This document shows positions 11,905 through 37,174 of a stretch of DNA of 64,000 bases, piece after piece (position 1 is the first letter of the stretch; each line of letters opens with the position of its first letter). This DNA is from Chrysemys picta bellii (taxonomy: Eukaryota): positions 90,520,001 to 90,584,000 of the forward strand of contig NC_088795.1 in assembly GCF_011386835.1 (NCBI RefSeq), read 5' to 3'. Below the pieces are notes generated by a model, which had not been told where the DNA came from, searched no databases, and worked only from the letters and a program-made list of their open reading frames with translations. The translations under genes were made by a program, and so were the position numbers.

Positions 11905-13922
11905 AGTATTTTATTATTGAAAAAGTTTGAGAGTAAAAAAATGTAAATTAAAAGATTTAAAAGCTACTGCTGAGACTATCCAAAGCAGAAACAATAGAAT
12001 AATGTAAGAACGTACTTTATATAGTTACTGTGAACCTCATCCTGCACCACTAATGTCAATGAAAGCTTTGCTGTTAACTTCATTTGGGGTAGTATCAATC
12101 TCTATAGTATCATTTCCCTTCACCCCATAAAGGACAAACCAACAATCTGTTAAAAATAGAATTGTACTCTTTCTGTATAAGCAATTCCCTTCCATGCCCC
12201 CAGAAGTTGAAACTAACCTATTTAAAATATTTACAAGTAATTCTTAATTTTTGTGTGTTTTATGTTGCCACTTTCAGTCCTTAAAATCTAGTCTCTACAC
12301 AGATATGACTAAACTGACAAAATATGACACCTTCATACAAGAATAAAGCTTGTATATGGTAGCAACAATATATTTACGTTAATTACAATATTTCTATTGA
12401 GACCATATTTCCAGTTTAAACACATTTTTATTAAGTCACAATCTTAACAATCTTATTGCAAAATACTGTAGATTGGAGACCAAGTGTAGCGAAGTTCAAA
12501 GTTTAATTCTTCCATGTCATTTTATATGTTCTTTACGTCTTATTGGTGTCCATAATGGAATCTGGGAAGTACAGGATTTTCTTCAAAGTTATATGAATGG
12601 AATGCTGTAAATCAGTCAGCAGGTATGCATTACAACAGTATAGGTTTCCCCTTCTAATTCTATACATAACACCAATAAATACTTGTCACATTATCTTTTG
12701 AATTACTAAATACTATTAAGCACTATTCAAATTTAACATTTTGGAGAAGGACAATTAAGATGAATCCAAATATACAGTTATCTGACATAGATCAGCTTTA
12801 ATGTATTATAAAAAAATGAATGTAGCACAGTACATAACCTACTTTGACCTAAACTTTTAATAATTGTCTGTCACATTTATCAGAGTTTTCGTAAAGAGAT
12901 TAATCCTCACTGCACTTACCTAGTAGCTCTATATCCTAATAAGGCCCTGTGTCACACCTCTTTAAAAACTTGAACTCAACTGCATGAACAATTCCAGATT
13001 TTGTTCTGATCTTTAAAAAAAAATAAAAATTGAAAAATATCTCCAGATTTAGTTTGGAAATATTCATATTAAGTATAATAGAACTATTGTGTAATATTTA
13101 GTACATTATAATACAGTACAAGTTTAAAATCTCATTTTCATTACTTTTCATTAACATTGGCAAAATAAGTTTTAAAATATAAATGGTATTACAGAAGATA
13201 TTGCAGAAGACTAGACTATTCTTTTTATTAGAGATGACAAAGTAAATTTATAAAATACAATTCTTGATTTGACACTTCTTTGTTAAGAAGAAAAATCTAC
13301 AGCAAGGATGATAATACATTCAGAAAATAAACAGATTCAGCAAGACATGGGGTGTATAAAAGCAATGACATGCAAACAGAAAACACTTGTAAAAAAATCC
13401 AAAACACATGGAAATCCACCAGAACCATAACAAATATACTGTACATGAACCAATCTTTAAAAAAGTCCAAGCCTGGTTTTGCTCAATATTAGCTCATGCT
13501 GTAGTATGGACAAATTTCTGAAGCCATATCTGATTTAAGCAAATTTAAATTAGTAGAGAAATCAGAAGTTGTTGCATCAGTTATTCTGACCCAGCTTCCT
13601 TCTTTTGTACCATGAATTTCTATAGCTATTACGCTAGCTTTGCAAAACTGTCATGCGACTTTGTTATAATGTGTGAATTTTGTGCGTCGACAAGCAATGA
13701 AAAGCACCCATAAAAAAAAACCTTGTCACCCCCAGATAAATGGGAGAATAGAATTTTGCAAGGCTGATTGTAGGACACGTGCACACACAAATTCACAAGT
13801 TATCACTGATTTGAAGCAAAGTCAGAGGTAGAATTCATGTCAACCTTCATAATTTTCAAAAGTCCTTGAAACAAGTTAATCCTTCTGTTACAAGTTTAGT
13901 TTTAAGACTATCCCAGGTATGG
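11905..13922 (-). other. CEP135: Probable CEP135 3' UTR with candidate AATAAA signals at 13224-13229, 12427-12432 and 11910-11915
   Basis: AT-rich stretch with no recognisable TE directly after the stop codon; which signal is used cannot be told from sequence. Confidence 0.55.
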
Positions 13923-13944
13923 TTATTCCTTGAAGCTCACATTT
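13923..13944 (-). CDS. CEP135: CEP135 terminal coding micro-exon, (K)NVSFKE*
   Basis: Long pyrimidine tract TTTCTTCTTCTTCCCCCCACCCAG followed by AAATGTGAGCTTCAAGGAATAA; phase 2 fits the previous exon; followed by an AT-rich UTR-like region. Confidence 0.85.
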
Positions 13945-15634
13945 CTGGGTGGGGGGAAGAAGAAGAAATTTTAAAAATATAAACATCTGCTTACAGCATT
14001 TTTTTCAATTCAACCAAGGGTAAAATATATAATAACATTACCTTCTTCATAGTTTATTCCTAAATTACTTGAATCAGCCCATGATATCACCCACAGAATT
14101 TATTTTAATATACTATTTCATTCTTGACACATGTCGCACAAGCACTGGACAAAAGTACAATGTAAGACAAGGACAAGAAGAAAGTTATTAGGTTAGACTA
14201 AGTGGCTTATAAAAAGGGGGAAAATTCCCAGTATACAGTATAAAACAACACAATTGACAGAGCACACTTCCACTGTGGAACGCTGCAAGGAAGGGATAAA
14301 TAAGAAGTAAAACCGATAAGAGAGAGAGGGTAAAAAGTTCACGGGCAGGTCAGAATGTCAAGAAACAATTATTCATTGGACTCAGAACTGGGATTGGACA
14401 AATCTTAAATTTGTGTATGAAATCAGATATTTCAAGAGTATTTGGATTCAAGCAAAGTCCATGGAAAAAGTACAAATATTAAATGGTATCTCTTCTGTTA
14501 ACTTTGTGCAATTTTGGGATTTTTGGTTCCCCTCTGACAGTTCAGACATGATCTAGTTAGACAAGTCAGCTGTGGTAGCATACATGGTTACTAAATACTT
14601 TCTGAAAATAAACAAAGCTCATTCTCACTGTCCTTTGATTTTGACTTTTCACTGAGATGTAACATGTAGCGGTGGGAGAGGTGGGTCACACAAACCTGTA
14701 ACCAGGTTTGTAACATTGACAGGCCACATCTAAAACAATAATCTTTGTAAAAATGTAGAGACATACGTGAGTGTCCTGCAAATCTCCTGGACAGCAAAAG
14801 ATTACAGGCTAGCTACAGATTCTGATCTACCACTGATAGACTGTGCCTTATCATGACCTTGAACGTTCAGACCTTGGCAATCAGAAATGAAAGAGTCCCC
14901 AAGATGCATCTTGGGAAGCTGGCAGTTTGTGCTTGAACCTTTCAAAAAAATCAAAGTTTTTGCTGCTTAGTAGCCTGGGGCTTGGCATCCTGAGGCCTCT
15001 GCTAATGCAGAGGCCCAGCACCTTCCAGGTATCCTTCAAACCAACCTAGAAATAAAGAACAACATCTTGACCTGTCCCTTACCTCTTTTGTGGAAGGTAG
15101 AGGGTTGGATAATGGATCCCAAGAAACAGAATCTGACCACACTCCTTTTTGCCTTCACGAGACTGTCCTCTGCCAAAATGCCCATTTAGCAAACCTTCAA
15201 TCTGCTAAACTGCCTACTGAAAGCCAAAAATCTCAGGCTAATGTATCTATGGGTATCAAGTGCGTTGGAGGATTTTCACACTCAATGCTAGGCCATTTCC
15301 AATCCCTTATAGACTGAATTCCATACAATTTTGCTAGGGGCGAGGACTGATAAACTGGTATGACTATTTCCAAAGCTCATAATAGTAGTTACCTATGTAT
15401 CTATGTTATCTACCTTAGTATAGATTCCTATAACAGTGTATGTGTTATTAATAGGTAGCTCCTAGTATGGGTTGTTGCTCTTCATTCTTAGAGCATCCCA
15501 GCGTTAGAGTCGTGATTCAGGGGTGTTGAACTATGAGGCTTGTCCTTGACCATCAATAACGCTACCATCAAGTGCTAATGTAAAAGGTAGAAGTAGTCAG
15601 TGGCATTCTTTGGCAGCGTGTGCTTGCATTTATT

Positions 15635-15635
<1 letters not shown>

Positions 15636-15672
<37 letters not shown>
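15636..15672. repeat. (AG)n microsatellite
   Basis: About 18 perfect AG units next to a SINE tail. Confidence 0.95.
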
Positions 15673-15675
<3 letters not shown>

Positions 15676-15677
15676 AT

Positions 15678-15848
15678 CTCATAGAACTGAAAGGGACCCC
15701 CAAAGGTCATCGAGTCCAGCCCCCTGCCATCACTAGCAGGACCAAGTACTGATTTTACCCGAGATCCCTAAGTGGCCCCCTCAAGGATTGAACTCACAAC
15801 CCTGGGTTTAGCAGGCCAATGCTCAAATCACTGAGCTATCCCTCCCCC
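15678..15848 (-). mobile_element. tRNA-derived SINE, same family as 125-412
   Basis: Reverse complement contains GGGAGGGATAGCTCAGTG, GAGTTCAATCC and the CR1-like tail. Confidence 0.9.
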
Positions 15849-16406
15849 AATTTTGCCACCTTACATGTGGCTAGAGTGGTATATGGATGGACTGGATGAT
15901 ATGATTTCTGGCCTGGAGCCCATAGTGGTTTTATGCACGAGTCGGATGACCCTAGCACCTCTCTCTACAAAAATGAGGAAGCATGGCTACTCTGAGGTAG
16001 AGAGAAGGAGAGGAAGAATTGAAGGCTATCTTCCTCAGTACCCCTGGATGTCATGACATAAAAAATTCCTCCAGCTTTCAGGGTATCAACCTGACAAGTC
16101 ATTCTCATCTTTCCATGTAGTAGTTTCAGGTTGATAGATGAGATGATTAGTGTATCAAATGTGGTGTAGCTGTCAACCCTGGTCTTTGTGAGGCCATTAA
16201 TGCTGAGAATATCAGAGCAAGGTGTGGTGAAGAGTGTGTTTAAGTGAGGTCTACCATGAATGCCATAATCTCAGAGTAGGCTATGTGCTTGGACAATATC
16301 TACAGCAGACTAGGCAAGATGCATGGCATACATCACCAAAGCTGAAGCAAGGAAACAAATTTATTAGACTGCACAAATACTCAAGCTCTGGCCAGTACAG
16401 GACACT

Positions 16407-16626
16407 GGATACGTTTACATAGCAACCAGACACCTGCAGCTGGCCCATGCCAGCCAACTTGGGCTCACGGGGCAGTTTCATTGCTGTGTAGACTTCTGGA
16501 TTCGGGCTGCAGCCTGAGCCCGGAAGTCTACACAGCAATGAAACAACCCTGCAGCCTGAGCCCTGTGACCCTGAGTCAGCTGGCACTGGCCAGCCGTGGG
16601 TTTTTCTTAGTTGTGTAGACATACCC
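16407..16626. mobile_element. Harbinger-type MITE with internal palindrome
   Basis: Ends GGATACGTTTACA / TGTAGACATACCC; internal inverted repeat TTTCATTGCTGTGTAGACTTC...GAAGTCTACACAGCAATGAAA. Confidence 0.65.
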
Positions 16627-17006
16627 AATTATCAGCTCAGTGGCACAGACATGCCCCAGCTCCCATCCCTCCCTCCCCTGCCCTTACTGGTGAAGAGTTT
16701 AATGGTTTTAGAATTTTAAAGCTATGGATGTATATCGCAGTCCTGTTCTATAAGCAAAATCCAAGGAGCAGGAATCCGTTGTAATATTTCGCTATTGGAG
16801 AATAACTAGCATTTATTATTTTCAGTCAATACTAGTTATTGTGTTTAAAACACTATAAGAGTGTAACTATCATTGGAGCGTTTAAATATTTCATATGCAC
16901 CAAAACATAAAATGCTGATTTCCTGCCCCCCATTTCAATTTAAATACAGCTGTATTTAATTCTTATGTGAACACTTAATCTTGACAAAAATCATCAAATT
17001 ACTTAC

Positions 17007-17153
17007 TTTTCTGCTGTTGCTCGATCAGTTGTTCTTACAATTGCACGCTCTGGAGAATGAGAAGGAGATCTCATTGTTGAACTAAGTGGAGATGAGGTAC
17101 GTACAGAAGATGTGGACAGACCATGTCGACGCATTTCCTGAATTGCACGCTCT
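17007..17153 (-). CDS. CEP135: CEP135 penultimate coding exon, ERAIQEMRRHGLSTSSVRTSSPLSSTMRSPSHSPERAIVRTTDRATAE(K)
   Basis: 147 nt, phase 2/2; TTGGTAG acceptor, GTAAGT donor; ERAIQEMRRHGL and LSST.RSPSHSPE match the CEP135 C-terminus; no stop inside the exon. Confidence 0.93.
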
Positions 17154-17509
17154 CTACCAAGTAGACAATAATTTTGTTAAACACTAATTTGTACACACTT
17201 ATCTTTATTACCACTATTAGCATTCATATTCTGCCACATCATATTTCTCTGCAGAAATTATTAGATGATAAAAGAAAATGAAAGGTGATAATTTAAATGG
17301 ATAGCATATATACATTTTAAATAAAAATGTCTCAATTATATTTAAGGGACACAGATCACTTTTTAAAATTAATGGTTAAAAGTAACATTTAAGGGTACAA
17401 TAAAAGGTTAGAAAAAAATTCTCTATTTTTTCAGTTTGTTTACTTTGTGAATTTGACAACACTGTGTGTAGTCAGTCTTGTTCTTCTGTAAACTCAGTAT
17501 ATATGTTTT

Positions 17510-18176
17510 TTGTATGGTCTCCCATACCTCAAGAGGTGAGGAAAAACCCCTACTTACCACCTGAGCTGGAACTAACATGGACTGTACCAGGGGAAAGGAT
17601 TGGGCCCAGACTAGGAACGAGTCTAGTCTGTGAAAGAAGCTTATTGGAACACCTGAGGCTGAGATGTGATCTGTAATCAGTTTCTTAATGTATTAGGCTT
17701 AGACTTGCGTGTTGTTGCTTTATTTTACTTGGTAACTTACTTTGTTCTGTCTGTTATTACTTGAAACCACTTACATCCTACTTGTTATACTTAATAAAAT
17801 CATTTTTGTTTATTAGTAAACCCAGAGTAAGTGATTAATACCTGGGGGAGCAAAGAGCTGTGCATCTCTCGCTATCAATGTTATAGAGGGTGGACAATTT
17901 ATGAGTTTACCCTGTATAAGCTTTATACAGAGTAAAATGGATTTATTTGGGGTTTGGATCCCATTGAGAACTGGGTGTCTGGGTGCTGAGCAGTTTTTGG
18001 TTAAAGTCTGCAGCTTTGGGGGTGTGGACCAGACTCTGGGTCGCAGCAGGCTAGCGTGTCTGGCTCAACAAGGCAGAGTTCTGGAGTCCCAAGCTAGCAG
18101 GGAAAAAGGGCTCAGAGGTAATCTTGGCATGTTAGGTGAGAGTCCCAAAGGGGTCTCTGTGACCGAACCCGTCACA
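17510..18176 (+). mobile_element. LTR fragment (3' part of a solo LTR)
   Basis: AATAAA followed by U5-like sequence ending ...CCCGTCACA; 5' end and TSD not found. Confidence 0.55.
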
Positions 18177-18460
18177 GGTGTCTCCCGGGCTTGATCCAGT
18201 TGTAAGAATTTTGGCTAATGCATTGTAACTATATTGTTGCTAGGATATAAAATATGAGGGTATATATGCTTGTATTGATATTCTGAATGTAATCAACACC
18301 AAGAGGTCTTTGGAATGCTTGTGTGAAAACTGAGTTATAGTAAACCTTAATAAAATTATTAGGAAAACTATTTTCAAACACACAGTATTGCATTAGCAGC
18401 TACCTTAATGATAGGAAAGGAGGATCACCCCACTGAAACAAAAACAACACAGGTGCTTAC

Positions 18461-18565
18461 CGTTCAAATCGTTCAGTTGTCAGTTGCCTTTTTAAAACAT
18501 CATAGTCCGTCTGTAGCTGTGCAACTTTACTTCGAAGTATGGAAACTTCTCTATTATGACTGGTT
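18461..18565 (-). CDS. CEP135: CEP135 coding exon, TSHNREVSILRSKVAQLQTDYDVLKRQLTTERFE(R)
   Basis: 105 nt, phase 2/2; TTTTTAG acceptor, GTAAGC donor; KVAQLQTDYD.LKRQ matches CEP135. Confidence 0.97.
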
Positions 18566-18869
18566 CTAAAAATAGCATGAGAAGTAACAAAAAATTTTCT
18601 TAAACTGTTGCACACTTTCAGCTGGTATCTTAGAGGAATTAGGAAAAACAGAAATGAACAAGGGAAACCAAAAAATGAAATAAGAGGAGTTGTTACTTCA
18701 ACAACTCAAAATAACAAAGTGAGAATCAGAAGTGATGGGAAGAATTGAATGAATACAATGACAAACTACTGGATAAAGCTAACCTGTAAAAGACAGAAGT
18801 GTGAACTTGGAAGTCCTTCAATAAATTCATACTACAGTGCATTATATTCCTTTATAGATAAAAATATAC

Positions 18870-37028: not shown

Positions 37029-37174
37029 NNNNNNNNNNNNNNNNNNNNNNNNNNNNNNNNNNNNNNNNNNNNNNNNNNNNNNNNNNNNNNNNNNNNNNNN
37101 NNNNNNNNNNNNNNNNNNNNNNNNNNNNNNNNNNNNNNNNNNNNNNNNNNNNNNNNNNNNNNNNNNNNNNNNNN
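37029..37174. other. Assembly gap (146 N)
   Basis: Run of n; no CEP135 exon is missing across it. Confidence 0.99.

Follow-up and report, generated by a model that had tools for sequence, protein, structure and literature searches.

PP1 derives its specificity from docking proteins, of which few are known at centrosomes; CEP192 is one centrosomal recruiter that carries an RVxF motif. In the centrosome linker, CEP135 serves as the docking site for C-Nap1, whose release by NEK2A is opposed by PP1; the NEK2A-PP1 pair controls C-Nap1 (PMC6406801). PPP1R35 resides in the proximal lumen, near CEP135, and contains an RVxF motif that is restricted to chordates (PMC6141234). The x position of RVxF motifs is subject to phospho-regulation, and KNL1 combines a SILK with an RVSF motif (PMC6363451, PMC6406801, PMC5874294). 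S/GILK is the second classical PP1-docking motif (PMC5874294), and when both motifs of KNL1 are phosphorylated, PP1 is blocked (PMC5874294, PMC6406801). Here, we describe the C-terminal end of CEP135 in the turtle Chrysemys picta bellii and ask how it compares with these systems.

The last exons of turtle CEP135

The window, which is the whole 64,000-nucleotide stretch of DNA that was analysed, contains the 3' half of the CEP135 gene on the minus strand. In a tblastn search with a teleost CEP135 (P0010, Trachinotus), we found ten co-linear minus-strand exons that extend from 56283 to 17015, match residues ~623-1152 and, first exon excepted, are 56-69% identical to the query. The proteins nearest to the window gene, as judged by similarity along the C-terminal coiled coil, carry the name CEP135. 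A run of N at 37029-37174, inside a CEP135 intron, is an assembly gap or mask.

The antepenultimate coding exon (18461..18565, minus strand; ...NREVSILRSKVAQLQTDYDVLKRQLTTERFE-) was placed by the P0010 alignment and by the joint 17153 to 18461 in four runs, and the penultimate coding exon of 147 nt (17007..17153, minus strand) by sequence, tblastn and spliced contigs. From 17153 to 17007 the latter translates as (R)ERAIQEMRRHGLSTSSVRTSSPLSSTMRSPSHSPERAIVRTTDRATAE, in which the end of the coiled coil (RERAIQEMRRHG) gives way to a Ser/Thr/Pro-rich, predicted disordered stretch. The exon ends at 17007 with AA, the first two bases of a Lys codon, at the minus-strand donor ...gca aca gca gaa aa/gtaagt. 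The last intron (13945..17006, minus strand; 3062 nt, GTAAGT...CAG), defined by sequence and by the joint in four runs, has repeats inside and low, pre-mRNA-level coverage. It closes with a polypyrimidine tract and the acceptor ...ccccacccag at 13945. The terminal exon then begins at 13944 with a aat gtg agc ttc aag gaa taa, which supplies the third Lys base, Asn-Val-Ser-Phe-Lys-Glu and a TAA stop at 13925-13923. These 22 coding bases (13923..13944, minus strand) were recognized from sequence, spliced contigs and homologous exons elsewhere, and the K-N-V-S-F core is built from 17008-17007 plus 13944-13932. Continuous with them is the 3' UTR (13000..13922, minus strand), which transcript contigs follow to at least 13000 and, in one case, 484 nt further.

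To evaluate the last junction in transcripts, we aligned Logan contigs from four runs, which represent four studies and three related organism labels, to 13000-18800. One contig per run, in all four runs, contains the joint between 13944 and 17007, which skips 3062 bases with plus-strand borders CT..AC (GT..AG when read on the minus strand); the upstream joint 17153 to 18461 is likewise found in contigs of all four. No base differences occur within 13923-13944 in the contigs of the four runs. The first-pass annotation had proposed the splice from 17007 to 13944, giving ...RATAE-K-NVSFKE with the Lys codon split AA/A, and had suggested RNA-seq as the check: the junction is exact in contigs of four independent studies, and both sequence and spliced contigs confirm the reading. 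The same annotation termed the feature a micro-exon, that is, an exon of a few to ~30 nt between two introns, and this description must be withdrawn. Contigs with the joint run unbroken from 13944 to 13302, to 13459 or past 13000; the feature is therefore the start of a long terminal exon of at least 1.4 kb, mostly 3' UTR, in which only the coding part measures 22 nt.

Because parts of the last intron are covered by low-depth contigs, and because read-through meets a stop at once (the unspliced frame reads ...AEK and then stops, AAG TAA), one could argue that the main product ends at ...AEK via intron retention and that the junction represents a minor or aberrant isoform. We give this explanation almost no credence: long multi-exon contigs use the joint in all four runs, with a word depth 3- to 10-fold above that of scattered intronic pieces, and chicken cDNA clones, proteins P0133, P0136 and P0143 and most RefSeq fish models share the spliced end. 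From these results, we conclude that turtle CEP135 is expressed with ...RATAE-K-NVSFKE as its genuine C-terminus. Separately, contig depth rises to thousands and to more than 100,000 at 15522-15909 and 17462-18237, inside the last two introns; these intervals are probably highly repeated transcribed elements, SINE or other retroelement copies.

Conservation of the ending outside mammals

A search of a 50%-clustered library with the 49-residue exon returned 12 representatives, so few because vertebrate CEP135 proteins seem to be grouped under one fish representative at 50% identity. Most are ORFs from genomic sequence in which translation runs past the donor and terminates at ...EK or ...DR, which indicates that a split Lys or Arg codon at the exon end is general. 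P0010, the sole full-length match in the clustered library, ends ...SADKSVSFKD. For teleosts we used a set of 120 acanthomorph full-length CEP135 models, obtained by word search. The last exon is present in 76 of the 120, and all 76 end [KR][SN]V[ST]F[KR][DE], with zero entropy at V and F; another 37 end at the penultimate-exon boundary, the 22 coding bases having been missed by the predictor. Eight teleost species continue past ...SFKD. A free C-terminus is thus not required, as fits an internal linear motif.

Similar endings are found in alligator gar (...LEKSVSFKE), in the frog Eleutherodactylus coqui (...AEKSVSFKD) and in the transcript-derived sauropsid proteins P0133 and P0143 (...AEKNVSFKE), each directly before the stop. 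In loci retrieved by exact protein look-up, a homologous tail exon lies directly after a CAG or TAG acceptor and encodes, up to its stop codon, KNVTFKA in a bird (L002), KNVGFKD in Crotalus tigris (L006), SVSFKD in a frog (L007) and SVSFKE in gar (L008); further homologous exons are present in a teleost (L009) and in chicken (L010). The reverse cloning primer used for chicken Cep135 encodes NVSFKE and a stop (PMC3756917), which means that chicken cDNA clones share this end. In addition, the 3'-arm primer given for chicken in the same paper (PMC3756917) matches the 3' UTR of the chicken locus, which encodes P0143.

Between loci, the tail codons change synonymously (AAT/AAC, GTG/GTA, AGC/AGT, TTC/TTT and AAG/AAA) and the stop is TAA or TGA, while the residues just upstream of the tail diverge freely between vertebrate classes. 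That the amino acids are kept through such changes, next to divergent sequence, argues that the constraint acts on the peptide. The positions that vary are the two x positions, N/S and S/T/G, the Ser being replaced by Thr in one bird and some fishes and by Gly in the rattlesnake; V and F show no change across teleosts, gar, frog, turtle, birds and snake. The first-pass annotation had staked its reading on the persistence of these two residues, and both are indeed kept in birds, reptiles, a frog and fishes. Together, these comparisons indicate that [KR]-[NS]-V-[STG]-F-[KR]-[DEA] is a linear motif under protein-level purifying selection that predates the split between ray-finned fishes and tetrapods.

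Gene annotation systematically leaves out the 22-nt coding end. The immediate stop of the unspliced frame at ...AEK explains why many automatic gene models lack the tail, and models of Varanus, Zootoca, Staurois and Nothoprocta end at the penultimate exon or run into the intron. The rattlesnake, in which the canonical tail exon is intact (L006 17137-17159), has a RefSeq isoform model, Crotalus X1, that instead uses an acceptor 700 nt further on (L006 17841-17888) and ends ...NSEVKFEELTHLSSSF. A Logan contig of 101 aa (P0004) is an intron-less CEP135 fragment over three exons that carries an RR to WW change among other lesions, and probably represents a processed pseudogene or a degraded transcript from some sauropsid.

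Loss of the tail in therian mammals

Mammalian CEP135 proteins end differently. Fragments from the deer Muntiacus reevesi and the bat Molossus molossus end ...SPLHSPEHIN and ...SPLQSPEQIN, respectively; transcript-derived mammalian clusters end ...SPEHINA, the possum Trichosurus vulpecula protein ends ...SPDHSHLK, and a mammal-like contig (L001) ends ...SPEDVN. The genomic penultimate exons locate the change: cat ata aac TGA tta tca gaa ag/gtactt in deer, ctg aaa TAG gta aca aaa ag/gtatgt in possum and gtg aac TGA gaa tta tca gaa ag/gtaggt in L001. In each, the stop keeps to the ancestral frame and precedes the retained donor by 11 or 14 nt (L003 38585-38610; L004 18895-18915; L001 2495-2525), and in deer and possum it aligns with the turtle GCA codon in D-R-A-T-A-E-K. 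The old last exon is still recognizable downstream in both species by its acceptor and a conserved 3' UTR element. What remains there of the tail exon is A ATG ATG GCT TTC CGT GAG in deer (which would read MMAFRE) and A GTT GTC TTC AAA AAC in possum (VVFKN). Such decay after the therian stop is expected if constraint acted on the peptide.

As read from these alignments, the tail was lost via an in-frame nonsense mutation in the penultimate exon, four codons from its end, and the old last exon now serves as 3' UTR only. The mutation probably occurred once, on the therian stem, TGA and TAG each being one step from TAA; independent nonsense events in therian lineages may also have produced the pattern. 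The first-pass annotation had given human CEP135 the ending ...SPEHRNV, just short of the final SF. An RNV end is absent from the deer, bat, possum, cluster and L001 sequences seen here, and the idea that the mammalian end corresponds to the NV of KNVSF was rejected, the stops of deer, possum and L001 falling inside the penultimate exon. The loss itself, ascribed by that annotation to the human lineage, stands insofar as the tail is absent from the mammals seen; its scope is wider, taking in marsupials and placentals alike.

A therian stop upstream of the last junction places the final intron in the 3' UTR. Nonsense-mediated decay generally follows a 50-55 nt rule, and the therian stop should be close enough to the junction to avoid it. 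Using the turtle terminal exon as a blastn query against L002, L003, L004 and L006, we also identified a conserved 3' UTR element (tgaaaattatgaag...gaattctacctc; 13803..13880, minus strand), ~45-120 nt past the stop, that bird, snake, possum and deer all keep. Possum and deer retain the element although no part of their last exon is translated; it may be a regulatory site.

These observations bear on the possibility that conservation of the tail reflects nucleotide-level constraint, such as acceptor function, exon definition or 3' UTR regulation, with little role for the protein. The UTR element of the last exon does persist even in mammals, and therians lost the coding tail and kept the gene. 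However, five of the seven codons carry synonymous substitutions and TAA alternates with TGA with no change of amino acid between teleost and turtle, the seven loci compared here already suggest a tail dN/dS far under 1, and in the untranslated therian exon it is the 22 bases that diverge, whereas the splice signals and the UTR element stay. We therefore consider a purely nucleotide-level explanation very improbable, and adding the isoform explanation to it still leaves the two with only a small share of the probability.

The ending as a candidate PP1-docking site

We compared the tails with three published RVxF definitions, as quoted in PMC3792071. KNVSF, KSVSF, RSVSF and KNVTF fit all three, and rattlesnake KNVGF fits the two broader ones, failing only the Meiselbach form, which is the strictest. 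All 76 teleost tails match [KR]xVxF as well as both strict forms. The ~1100 residues of the teleost proteins outside the tail average ~0.1 RVxF match and lack any SILK match, which leaves the tail as practically their only RVxF-type site. The consensus match noted in the first-pass annotation for KNVSF is thereby upheld, even under the two stricter definitions.

A second, SILK-type string, SILR, occurs 7-19 residues upstream of the RVxF-type core in 70 of the 76 teleosts, in the frog E. coqui and in fragment P0002. Arg or Lys at the last position of the SILK consensus is reportedly acceptable, a point said to go back to Hendrickx et al. in 2009. The homologous position reads SALR in gar, AIVR in turtle and AVAR in chicken, and turtle AIVR falls outside the S/G-I-L-K/R pattern. 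This degeneration suggests that the bipartite form is an anamniote feature, amniotes keeping the RVxF-type part only; the amniote case then rests on five residues.

The first-pass annotation had described the tail as disordered, which agrees with predictions made here. Ser, Thr and Pro make up 47% of the turtle tail. In an AlphaFold2 model of the chicken orthologue, computed with an alignment, the C-terminal 130 residues form one long helix to ...RRHG, and the last ~45 residues have pLDDT values of 51 or less and no secondary structure. The composition and the model support a tail that is disordered and accessible.

TSGA10, the vertebrate paralogue (ohnologue) of the C-terminal half of CEP135, offers a further comparison. 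At the homologous position, gar TSGA10 (P0169/P0177) strictly matches RVxF with its ending ...DRSVTFRDF and, like CEP135, has ERFERERAVQELRRQG and a Ser/Pro-rich segment ahead of this ending. Frog TSGA10 (P0166) ends ...ERSLLFRDY, in which Leu replaces Val; with its RSLLFRDY, and with the divergent tails of other fish TSGA10 proteins, TSGA10 departs from CEP135. The resemblance of the gar and frog endings to that of CEP135 suggests that this type of ending probably predates the CEP135/TSGA10 duplication.

We propose that the CEP135 tail is a candidate RVxF-type PP1-docking site, and we assign this reading a probability of roughly 45%. The last coiled-coil heptads are followed by a Ser/Thr/Pro-rich, predicted disordered tail of ~45 residues, of which the last seven are added by splicing. 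In this proposal, the hydrophobic groove of the PP1 catalytic subunit would accommodate the Val and Phe. CEP135 would thereby become a scaffold that targets PP1 to the proximal end of centrioles, and the SILR upstream of the core in teleosts and the frog could provide a second PP1 contact, as in KNL1 and Inhibitor-2. A kinase acting on the Ser or Thr at the x position could switch PP1 binding off, although the rattlesnake Gly implies that no such phospho-switch can be universal. PP1 held on CEP135 might oppose NEK2-type phosphorylation of C-Nap1 and linker proteins, a role made plausible by the docking of C-Nap1 on CEP135.

Several points weigh on this proposal. RVxF-like strings are common, and a post-hoc match to a motif library is permissive. 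The Lys/Arg and Asp/Glu that follow the Phe are conserved as well and are not required for RVxF binding, which hints at an additional or different partner. The tail Ser has Lys at -3, in place of the Arg at -2 that Aurora kinases prefer. Chicken DT40 cells without any Cep135 are viable (PMC3756917); given also that therians lack the tail, any function of the tail must be dispensable or redundant. Two other assignments, a PDZ ligand and a 14-3-3 mode III site, were rejected, for several teleosts extend past SFKD and the Ser lies three residues from the end.

The tail might instead be a conserved motif that is not PP1's, either a kinase site or a docking peptide for another centriolar protein, and we regard this as a serious possibility, if one on the improbable side of even. 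The Lys at -3 and the Phe at +1 of the Ser would suit basophilic kinases, and the tetrapod N-x-S-F resembles a PLK1 site. Such a reading would also accommodate the conservation beyond the RVxF core, namely F-[KR]-[DE] and the acidic residue that precedes the Lys, and a literature search in a library mostly without subscription journals yielded no paper that links CEP135 or TSGA10 to PP1 and nothing for the tail peptide strings. A pure phosphosite, however, should show the opposite of what is seen: the invariant positions are exactly V and F, and it is the presumed phospho-acceptor that varies (S, T, G). The co-occurring SILK-type motif of anamniotes would likewise go unexplained, in contrast to PP1 docking, for which it would be a second contact.

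If the PP1-docking reading is extended to both paralogues, ancestral vertebrate CEP135 and TSGA10 could each have been a bipartite (SILK plus RVxF) PP1-targeting subunit, positioned at the proximal centriole beside the C-Nap1 dock and opposing NEK2-driven disjunction, with loss by a single nonsense mutation on the therian stem. In its entirety we consider this scenario rather unlikely, and offer it only as a speculative extension.

The tail sequence itself is already known: it is present in public protein records, and chicken constructs were built with the NVSFKE end. We found no record or paper that interprets the CEP135 ending, again in a library mostly without subscription journals. Three points appear to be new: that the ending can be read as a PP1 module, that a SILK-type motif accompanies it in fishes and frogs, and by what mechanism and how widely it was lost in therians. 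If the reading is true, CEP135, as the anchor of the centrosome linker, places PP1 exactly where NEK2 acts, and human and mouse centrosome research has missed a PP1 recruitment route that still works in fishes, amphibians, reptiles and birds. Its absence from marsupials and placentals, and its frequent omission by gene predictors, would explain why it escaped notice. If PP1 does not bind, a seven-residue ending kept for more than 400 million years still marks some other interaction. Tools for CEP135 exist in chicken DT40 cells, Xenopus extracts and zebrafish, and C-terminal tags on non-mammalian CEP135 should be used with caution, as they adjoin the conserved motif.

The nearest parallel to the proposed module is the N-terminus of KNL1, where, as in teleost and frog CEP135 (SILR-x(7-19)-K[SN]VSF), a SILK-type motif precedes x-V-S-F in a disordered region and Ser occupies the x position. 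Unlike KNL1, CEP135 carries its candidate module at the extreme C-terminus, with a shorter linker and without the Arg at -2 that Aurora would favour; amniote CEP135 differs further in having the RVxF-type part only. NEK2A, PPP1R35 and CEP192 resemble CEP135 in that a short RVxF-type motif occurs in a centrosome or centriole protein. In those proteins, however, PP1 binding was established experimentally and the motifs are kept in mammals, whereas the candidate CEP135 motif is absent from therians. The chicken Cep135 of the DT40 work (PMC3756917) shares with the turtle gene the same exon structure and the NVSFKE ending. In contrast, about a third of annotated teleost CEP135 models, and several frog, lizard and bird models, differ from the turtle gene in missing the tail, as the last exon contributes no more than 22 coding nucleotides.
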